In this document: positions 41,480 through 42,883 of the stretch, piece by piece
How the letters are laid out: each line of letters begins with the position of its first letter
Numbering within the stretch: the first letter of the stretch is position 1
DNA from: Octopus sinensis
Lineage: Eukaryota
Assembly (NCBI RefSeq): GCF_006345805.1
Contig: NC_043023.1
Coordinates: 12,958,001-13,022,000, forward strand
Direction of reading: 5' to 3'
Length of the DNA stretch: 64,000 nucleotides
Notes under the pieces: generated by a model
What the model saw: the letters and a program-made list of their open reading frames with translations, nothing else
The model's database searches: none
What the model was told of the DNA's origin: nothing
Made by a program: the position numbers and the translations under genes

Positions 41480-42883
41480 TCACAGTGATATGGTTTTTTC
41501 CCCAGTATGTATACGTTTGTGTCGAGTCAAATGAGAACTACTAGAGAATGATTTACCACAGATATCACAATGATATGGTTTTTCACCTGTATGAATCCGT
41601 TTGTGTTTAGGCAGGGCACTACCGTGAGAGAATGATTTACCACAGATATCACAATGATATGGCTTCTCACCTGTATGAATACGTTTGTGCCCGTTTAAAT
41701 TAGAATGCTGGGAAAATGATTTACCACAGATATCACAGTGATATGGTTTTTCCCCAGTATGTATACGTTTGTGACCAGACAAATGACTACTACAAGAGAA
41801 TGATTTACCACAGATATTACAATGATATGGTTTTTCACCTGTATGAATACGTTTGTGATTAGGCAGGTCACTACCCTGAGAGAATGATTTACCACAGATA
41901 TCACAATGATATGGCTTCTCACCCGTATGAATACGTTTGTGCCCGTTTAAATTAGAATGCTGGGAAAATGATTTACCACAGATATTACAATGATATGGTT
42001 TTTCACCTGTATGAATACGTTTGTGATTAGGCAGGTCACTACCGTGAGAGAATGACCTACCACAGATATCACAATGATATGGCTTCTCACCTGTATGAAT
42101 ACGTTTGTGCCCGTTTAAATGAGAATGCTGGGAAAATGATTTACCACAGATATTACAATGATATCGCTTCTCTCCTGTATGAATATGTTCGTGTCTGGTT
42201 AAATGGCTATTTTCAGAGAATGATTTACCACAGATATCACACTGATATGGCTTCTCGCCTGTATGAATACGTTTGTGCCCGTTTAAAGTAGAATTATGGG
42301 AAAATGATTTACCACAGATATCACATTGATATGGTTTTTCCCCAGTATGAATACGTATATGACTAGTCAAATGACTACTTGTAGTGAATGATTTACCACA
42401 GATATCACAATGGTATAGCCTCGCTCCTGTATGTGTACGTTTGTGTGTAGGTAAGTTTCCACTGGTAGAGAATGATTTACCACAGATATCACACTGATGC
42501 GGCTTTTCCCCAGTATGAATAAATTTGTGATGAGTTAAAGTGCTATTTTGAGAAAATGATTTACCACAGATATCACACTGATATGGTTTCTCTCCTGTAT
42601 GAGTACGTTTGTGTTTACTTAAGTCAGCACTTCGAGAAAATGATTTACCACAGATATCACACAGATGCGGCTTTTCCCCAGTATGAATAAATTTGTGATG
42701 AGTTAAAGAGCTATTGTCAGAAAATGATTTACTACAGATATCACACTGATATGGTTTTTCTCCAGTATGAACACGTCTGTGCCTTCTTAGATTACCACTT
42801 TGAGAGAATAACTTACCACAGATATCACAGTGATATGGTTTGTCTCTTTTCTCAGAGATTTTTGCTTTAGTTGAATTATTCAT
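41480..42883 (-). CDS. Zinc-finger copy A': 16 fingers, same TISL frameshift as A (ancestral stop at 41245)
   Basis: 467-aa ORF, closest paralog of A. Promoter deleted at 45844 as in A. Confidence 0.85.

Follow-up and report, generated by a model that had tools for sequence, protein, structure and literature searches.

DNA bases are contacted by the C2H2 zinc finger through four canonical positions of its helix, -1, +2, +3 and +6, and in PRDM9, whose zinc-finger minisatellite is built of 84-nucleotide (nt) units remodelled by unequal recombination, changes are concentrated at -1, +3 and +6. The C2H2 zinc-finger repertoire of octopus is among the largest outside vertebrates. Here we describe, in a stretch of 64,000 nt of the Octopus sinensis genome (contig NC_043023.1, positions 12,958,001 to 13,022,000; the whole stretch is referred to below as the window), a tandem cluster of C2H2 poly-zinc-finger genes without effector domains, in which two members, named A and A', are true paralogues derived from a direct segmental duplication. 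The two genes differ by a two-finger indel and by substitutions that pile up at the base-contact positions, for which donors are absent from the window. With about even chances, diversifying selection on DNA-binding specificity, acting within a birth-and-death family, lies behind this pattern.

As in PRDM9, the arrays of A and A' consist of 84-nt units with unequal recombination, and changes in the cluster concentrate at -1, +3 and +6; unlike PRDM9, the two genes lack KRAB, SSXRD and PR/SET and belong to a multi-gene tandem family instead of being a single hypervariable locus. Among young KRAB-ZNF paralogues of mammalian tandem clusters, positive selection at contact residues has been reported (Emerson & Thomas 2009, as cited in PMC10547256; Nowick et al. 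2011, PMC3126818). A and A' resemble that family in their tandem segmental duplication, in the frequent pseudogenes around them and in a divergence that proceeds by gain or loss of fingers and by substitution at the four DNA-contacting residues. They differ from it in that Pfam finds neither KRAB nor any other effector, only a 17-residue leader preceding the fingers, in that the cluster belongs to a mollusc and not to a tetrapod, and in that selection is not statistically established for them. Clades of recent in-paralogues in the FiNZ-ZNF family of cyprinid fish show a ratio of nonsynonymous to synonymous substitution rates (dN/dS) above 1, with enrichment at base-contacting residues (Wells et al. 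2023, PMC10547256). That family is also lineage-specific, highly duplicated and composed of poly-ZNF genes with a short conserved N-terminal sequence, but the leader of A and A' matches only zinc-finger-type Pfam models and looks like a degenerate finger, and the octopus pair is known from sequence alone. Young paralogues of both the KRAB-ZNF and the FiNZ-ZNF families have been described as behaving in the way seen here for A and A' (PMC3126818, PMC10547256).

Lineage-specific C2H2 expansions have also been described in octopus itself (Albertin et al. 2015, as cited in PMC10547256 and PMC12513265; Holzinger et al. 2025, PMC12513265). Expansion and expression are covered there, and an arms race with transposons is raised as an open question (PMC12513265; PMC10547256); in the searched parts of PMC12513265, no mention of positive selection was found. 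The cluster described here shares with these expansions its tandem organization of many-finger genes and two finger motifs common to annotated Octopus proteins, and it differs from them in that no annotated octopus protein is closer than ~67% to the A/A' subfamily. Repeats of non-ZNF type from an O. vulgaris locus (L001; GCA_951406725.2, OX597842.1) match the spacers of the window at 85-94% over 230-420 nt, which, together with the common finger motifs, is in keeping with an octopod origin of the cluster. This locus was considered as an ortholog and rejected, its finger arrays being only 72-75% identical.

The two genes and the duplicated blocks that carry them are the following:

41480..42883, minus strand: A', an open reading frame (ORF) of 467 amino acids (aa) with a 17-residue leader and 16 C2H2 fingers, ending in ...HTGEKTISL*
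2289..3857, minus strand: A, the paralogous ORF of 522 aa, with the same leader, 18 fingers and the same truncated end as A'
1..7587: duplicated block with A; on the left it is interrupted by the window edge, and on the right it stops within a finger of gene B
39188..46519: duplicated block with A'; besides the gene it contains the 3' flank, the spacer and a truncated pseudogene, B'

All 16 fingers of A' follow the pattern C-X2-C-X12-H-X3-H, and the conserved Phe and the Leu at +4 are present in 16/16 fingers of A' and in 17/18 of A, the exception being finger 10 of A (Ser for Phe). Linkers of seven residues and TGEKP type give a 28-residue (84-nt) period, which Tandem Repeats Finder returns as 84/168/252 across 41291-42841 (A') and 2100-3815 (A). 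In both proteins, the Pfam models zf-C2H2 (PF00096; 282-305 bits) and zf-H2C2_2 (PF13465; 443-479 bits) match well over the gathering score, in 15-17 stretches, and no Pfam match was obtained for KRAB, SCAN, BTB, FiNZ-type or PR/SET (PF00856, PF21549) domains. At E<=0.01 the 17-residue leader is matched only by zinc-finger-type models. Its end, ...EKPY, resembles the linker of a decayed upstream finger, and just 5' of the ATG (3858-3960, and the equivalent spot above each leader) there is decayed-finger-like sequence (TATCATTGTGATATGTATAAC, YHCDMYN); the gene seemingly starts inside a former finger, and the leader looks like the remnant of a degenerate finger. Stop-to-stop frames in the upstream 3-kb spacer are all of 75 codons or less and yielded no convincing effector exon, although these frames were not run through Pfam and an unrecognised spliced exon is possible. 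A search with the full-length A' protein was dominated by vertebrate poly-ZNFs (best identity 61%) and one with the leader plus three fingers brought up Octopus proteins at 67% identity or less, neither providing an outgroup. No record was found in look-ups of the exact products of A, A' and two further genes of the window, E and F, and Rfam and tRNA scans gave no matches.

Both ORFs end prematurely at a frameshift, beyond which the remainder of the array can still be read in another frame:

41491..41509 (A'), 2300-2318 (A) and 59280-59298 (a third gene), minus strand: +1 frameshift in an A6 run of a linker (CATACTGGGGAAAAAACCA)
41245..41479, minus strand: three relic fingers of A', out of frame, running to the family's canonical ...HLSIHTQV* end
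2054..2288, minus strand: the counterpart relic fingers of A

An A6 in place of A5 in CATACTGGGGAAAAACCA thus truncates three different genes at ...TGEKTISL*, and the other 56 of 59 comparable linkers carry A4 or A5 and stay in frame. A homopolymer error of the assembly was judged an unlikely cause, given those in-frame linkers and the agreement of 18/19 long homopolymer runs between the two copies of the block.

In the best one-gap alignment, A and A' differ at 13 of 1404 nt (0.93%), with 11 nonsynonymous and two synonymous changes. The initial annotation had counted 11 residue differences and had assigned five of them to helix +3 or +6, a sixth to +5 and the remainder to the leader, the linkers and the CxxC loop; the alignment recovers every one of them as listed. 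The five contact changes, with fingers numbered from the leader, are:

42457, minus strand: finger 5, helix +3, AAC (Asn) in A' and GAC (Asp) in A at 3431
42121, minus strand: finger 9, helix +3, CAT (His) in A' and AAT (Asn) in A
41692, minus strand: finger 14 of A' and 16 of A, helix +6, GGG (Gly) in A' and AGG (Arg) in A at 2501
41616, minus strand: finger 15 of A' and 17 of A, helix +3, GCC (Ala) in A' and GAC (Asp) in A at 2425
41524, minus strand: finger 16 of A' and 18 of A, helix +6, CGA (Arg) in A' and GGA (Gly) in A at 2333

The other six, given as A/A', are I/T at helix +5 of finger 4, N6K and D11E in the leader, R44P and K155R in linkers, and N/D in a CxxC loop. The length difference is accounted for by a single segment:

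2940..3104, minus strand: A-only segment of 165 nt, one of ~56 equivalent placements, corresponding to a finger pair minus one linker codon

The extra finger pair announced for A is therefore present, but the indel measures 165 nt (55 codons) and not 56 codons, one linker of A lacking its His codon. An extra finger of A, HGSDLPN, carries Ser in place of the core Phe. Without altering the mismatch count, the gap can be placed anywhere within nt 753-770 or 792-829 of the coding sequence, and a gap so freely placed in a 168-nt periodic repeat is the trace expected from unequal recombination or slippage between two-finger units.

Five of 11 changes at +3 or +6, which make up 32 of the 467 codons, correspond to P=4.9e-4, although these two positions were singled out post hoc; taking all four canonical positions, 64 of the 467 codons, gives P=0.011, and weighting by nonsynonymous sites leaves this value at 0.011. 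By the Nei-Gojobori method, the nonsynonymous rate is 0.032 at contact codons (5 changes in 155 sites) and 0.0062 elsewhere (6 in 965), a 5.2-fold difference (95% confidence interval (CI) 1.25-20, P=0.011), and the synonymous rate is 0.0071 (2 in 281). A neutral expectation for the coding sequence was then taken from the substitution spectrum and rate of the flanks, which predicts 29.2 changes in total. Contact changes were more numerous than this expectation (5 observed, 2.85 expected) and all other classes less so: synonymous 2 against 7.7, other nonsynonymous 6 against 14.7, stop 0 against 0.95, and none in the 64 zinc-ligand codons against 3.0. The point estimate of the contact-site rate lies above every neutral yardstick that was built. 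Expressed as omega, the rate relative to the yardstick, it reaches 2.5 against the 5' flank (CI 0.74-6.7, P=0.07), 4.7 against proxies made of finger DNA, namely synonymous sites, relic fingers and B/B' (CI 1.3-15, P=0.010), and 6.8 when the two silent changes of the gene itself serve as the reference (CI 1.1-71, P=0.018).

These counts bear on the possibility that both copies are dead pseudogenes in neutral drift, with the contact clustering as a product of chance. Such a view could appeal to the truncating frameshift common to the two genes, to an overall dN/dS of at least 1 (11 nonsynonymous, two synonymous changes), to a coding divergence (0.93%) near that of the relic fingers (0.6-1.6%), and to the condition of the cluster, in which one of nine arrays is uninterrupted from leader to terminal finger (55149-56537). 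Uniform neutral mutation, on the other hand, would send 1.3 of the 13 changes to contact codons where five are observed (hand-estimated binomial P ~0.006-0.008); zinc-ligand and stop mutations together are zero against the 4.0 expected at the flank rate, and indels within the reading frame are all multiples of three. We regard dead genes as a highly unlikely explanation.

Gene conversion had been named at the outset as another source of the changes, and the longest exact match containing each allele was determined elsewhere in the window (137 fingers) and within A and A' themselves. At most sites one allele sits in a matching context of 24-82 nt, and was taken as ancestral, and the other in only 5-13 nt, which is the chance level. 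Each of the five contact changes is an isolated single-base difference, with chance-level context for the derived allele or with no context for either allele; donors for both alleles are plausible only at the I/T (+5) and N/D (CxxC) sites. As neither the window nor the two genes yielded a donor above chance length for any derived allele at the five contact sites, in-window conversion does not explain these changes. From the same comparisons, A' probably carries the derived state at all three +3 sites: the His of finger 9 because the Asn of A has a 73-nt matching context in sister fingers, the Ala of finger 15 (D-to-A) by its nucleotide context, and the D-to-N change of finger 5 by a protein-level comparison with other fingers. 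At +6, the Gly-to-Arg change in finger 16 of A is derived in A, and for finger 16 of A' and 18 of A (G/R) no polarity was obtained from context.

A similar excess is found across the cluster when changes among the 128 complete fingers of the window are counted by parsimony on a neighbour-joining tree. Omega is 3.7 at -1, 1.4 at +2, 2.3 at +3 and 2.2 at +6; for the four contact positions together it is 2.36 (144 nonsynonymous against 155.5 synonymous changes, P=3e-13), the same value being obtained on terminal branches alone, and for the remaining finger positions 0.51. The leader plus finger 1 of six units, which are strictly orthologous, show a proportion of nonsynonymous differences (pN, 0.04-0.24) above that of synonymous ones (pS, 0-0.07). 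All-pairs pN/pS values on the 128 fingers were saturated, and distorted by the Nei-Gojobori method at two-fold sites, and were not used for inference. As a separate observation, the linker residue before the first Cys (position 28 of the unit; H/Q/Y/K...), which is not a contact position, has a parsimony omega of ~2.1, matching +3 and +6.

Several results weigh against selection and have to be set beside this excess. When all flanks serve as the yardstick, contact omega falls to 1.75 (CI 0.56-4.2, P=0.17), a figure resting on five events, and the dS of the pair depends on two changes. The site-partitioned check proposed by the initial annotation therefore comes out divided: no point estimate of contact omega for the pair is as low as 1, and values of 1 or less are not rejected with confidence. 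The flanks themselves are overdispersed (variance/mean 4, P=1e-4) and contain clustered multi-base events, for instance around 745-790, which makes any neutral yardstick soft; flank divergence was rejected as an exact Poisson yardstick for this reason, and the range of yardsticks given above was used instead. The cluster-wide parsimony counts are supportive but not decisive, in that trees of recombining repeats may over-count variable sites. Reciprocal-best finger pairs, a conservative set from which A' and B' were left out, give a contact omega of 0.9-1.7 and a framework omega of 0.27-0.56, with -1 as the most changeable position. Moreover, not all silent sites behave as neutral. In 128/128 fingers, TGT encodes the two Cys residues and CAT the second His, eight codon positions show nine synonymous changes against 43 expected (P=3e-10), and synonymous heterogeneity across all finger positions is marked (P=1e-7); a 23-nt block, TGTGATATCTGTGGTAAATCATT, which encodes CDICGKSF, is identical in 71 fingers. 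Some silent sites are thus held or homogenised, which lowers dS and probably inflates omega. (The codons for Lys at +8, Arg at +9, Gly and Ser are also nearly fixed, and those for the linker Glu and Lys are split ~50:50.) Finally, the frameshift common to A and A' removes three fingers, the terminal relic finger, presumably untranslated, has also changed at +2 and +6, and A carries a linker Pro-to-Arg change, the core Phe-to-Ser change and the shortened linker, all of which look like decay.

Much of this would also be expected if the helix positions were simply unconstrained and drifting neutrally while the framework is under purifying selection, the contact changes piling up by default without positive selection. 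Relative to the flanks, contact sites evolve at 1.75 times the neutral rate, which is not significant, and the framework at 0.34 times (P<0.001); a contact omega of 1 with a framework omega of 0.3 predicts that about one third of amino acid changes fall at contact positions, compared with the observed 5/11, and the independent closest-finger pairs just mentioned, at about 1.0-1.7 for contact positions and 0.27-0.56 elsewhere, fall in line, as does a dS probably depressed by nucleotide-level constraint. This account fits less well with the contact omega of 4.7 against finger-DNA proxies (P=0.010), because the framework stands at ~0.9 against the same proxies and a 5-fold contrast is then more than differences in constraint would produce by themselves, nor with the cluster-wide omega of 2.2-3.7 at -1, +3 and +6. 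Altogether, drift without selection seems to us somewhat unlikely, and the pair alone cannot prove selection, of which the diversifying kind is plausible.

The relic fingers introduce a different mechanism. Those of A' differ from those of A by four substitutions, three of which lie within 14 nt of the terminal finger (41245-41330 against 2054-2140) and turn QKRHLST into QKGHLSK. Three independent mutations this close have a probability of ~0.003 per interval of that size, or ~0.06 after correction for the number of intervals, and no donor for the triple change was found in the window. It looks like a single templated or complex event, unless the frameshift is bypassed or erroneous. The window is probably a sample of a larger family, with possible donors elsewhere in the genome, and since it is chiefly in the helix that paralogous fingers are unlike one another, short events templated by them, whether micro gene conversion or complex mutation, would place differences at contact positions without any selection on the recipient. 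Consistent with this are the two hits at +2 and +6 of an out-of-frame finger, the further multi-base clusters in the flanks, the long matching contexts that both alleles of I/T and N/D have in other fingers, and the finding that fingers 96-99% identical occupy different places in the order from one gene to another. Against it stand the five in-frame contact changes themselves, isolated single-base differences whose derived alleles match at chance length, and the 5' flank, where unique derived alleles account for 20 of 22 differences, the mark of ordinary mutation. Templated events are accordingly a rather improbable source of the five changes. In a wider form, still less probable, short-tract conversion or clustered mutation would diversify recognition-helix codons independently of selection, in translated and untranslated fingers alike. 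If true, such a process would be a built-in generator of binding-specificity variants, loosely like immunoglobulin gene conversion, for which the nearly invariant 23-nt block of the CDIC knuckle could be a homology anchor.

The paralogy of A and A', on which selection as an explanation depends, is clear from the duplicated block. This direct duplication is at least 7.4 kb long, and its copies, 39 kb apart, are separated by four other distinct units and by a 147-nt satellite. The end of the block away from the window edge is marked by the truncated pseudogene:

45744-46519: B', compared with B at 6790-7587; ~7 of the 20 fingers of B are kept, and deletions have taken a complete finger (84 nt) and 38 nt from the terminal one

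B' adjoins an older spacer copy. It differs from B by ~4 substitutions in ~670 nt, none at contact positions, and shares with it a frame-breaking insertion; in this block, finger DNA has diverged less than spacer. The flanks of A and A' differ at 110 of 5224 aligned sites (2.1%) and by ten indels, and their cleanest 1.5 kb, on the 5' side, at 1.47%. The 5' flanks of other units diverge from A by 2-4.5%, which makes A and A' the youngest pair in the window by a modest margin. The very recent duplication of the initial annotation holds in this relative sense, the flank divergence of 1.5-2.1% being only modestly under that of the other units.

A divergence of 1-2% lies within the heterozygosity range of marine invertebrates, and the left boundary of the block falls outside the window. 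Both points would suit an assembly error, in which two haplotypes were placed as separate loci or a repeat was collapsed or misjoined, and A and A' would then differ as alleles do. The different neighbours of the two copies (B with 20 fingers, B' with ~7, two extra deletions and the older spacer next to it), the units and satellite intervening over 39 kb, and the long homopolymer runs, whose lengths match in 18/19 cases as in a clean assembly, argue against haplotypes joined in tandem. Moreover, the divergence of A and A' is on a continuum with that of other unit pairs. We consider an assembly artefact extremely unlikely.

Within 64 kb of AT-rich DNA (GC ~36%), the surrounding cluster comprises nine C2H2 finger arrays, among them those at 2066-3803, 6854-8528, 15533-17277 and 55161-56483; eight of the nine are on the minus strand. 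Five of the six leader-bearing genes have 5' spacers that are 95-99% identical:

3858-5357, 17332-18831, 25424-26923, 33223-34722 and 42884-44383: 5' spacers of five leader-bearing genes
56538 onward: spacer of the sixth, unit F, 88-90% identical and less so further upstream

Over the first 390 nt of their coding sequence, the leader-bearing units share only 81-90% identity. Near-identical fingers, with 2-3 differences per 84 nt, are found at different ordinal positions in different genes, which indicates that the arrays are mosaics of common finger cassettes. With its many damaged members, the cluster looks like a birth-and-death family. Damage takes several forms: an in-frame stop inside a finger (16207-16269) together with a frameshift before the terminal finger in the gene at 15533-17331, nonsense codons that interrupt the linkers leading to the last fingers (near 24370 and 31828) in those at 24131-25423 and 31762-33222, and, among these three genes, one first Cys replaced by Phe (HQFNICGK).

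Other repeats of the window are listed for completeness:

35602-37939, 49115-51200 and 61958-63866 (the third inverted): satellite of 145-148 nt, 13-16 copies in each array, 96-98% identity; a satellite unit directly adjoins the start of gene B, which is without the family leader
8844-9225, 12617-13015, 20301-20700, 37796-38193, 51319-51708 and 61682-62101: copies of an interspersed ~400-nt repeat, 86-89% identical to O. vulgaris L001:16518-16923
13857-14095: a shorter repeat piece, 94.6% identical to the O. vulgaris locus
9868-10286: GC-rich minisatellite (period 62/123 nt) that gives long spurious ORFs; similar ORF-like repeats lie near 15045-15434
13901-14457: 188-nt repeat
60645-61157: 174-nt repeat

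Returning to diversifying selection, the history of the pair may be pictured as follows. A direct duplication of at least 7.4 kb created A and A', and unequal recombination or slippage in the 168-nt two-finger periodicity would then have left them with 18 and 16 fingers. Isolated point mutations persist preferentially at the helix positions that set specificity, with zinc ligands and most of the framework held, as part of a cluster-wide regime in which specificity residues change as fast as neutral sequence or faster, and the framework about half as fast as neutral sequence. The selection on specificity proposed by the initial annotation draws support from the 5.2-fold contact excess, the absence of in-window donors and the cluster-wide contact omega of ~2.4; an omega above 1 for the pair itself is not established, as the comparison with the flanks shows. 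That selection, rather than a mere lack of constraint, is behind the contact changes is our inference, as are the production of the two proteins and their binding to DNA.

Taken alone, A and A' are an expected example rather than a discovery, and they are useful mainly as a starting point for a genome-wide test in octopus. With five specificity changes and a two-finger indel, the pair offers a concrete test case, as does the excess at -1, +3 and +6 throughout the cluster. Together, pair and cluster could show whether octopus ZNFs are retuned by selection, like the KRAB-ZNFs of mammals and the FiNZ-ZNFs of fish.

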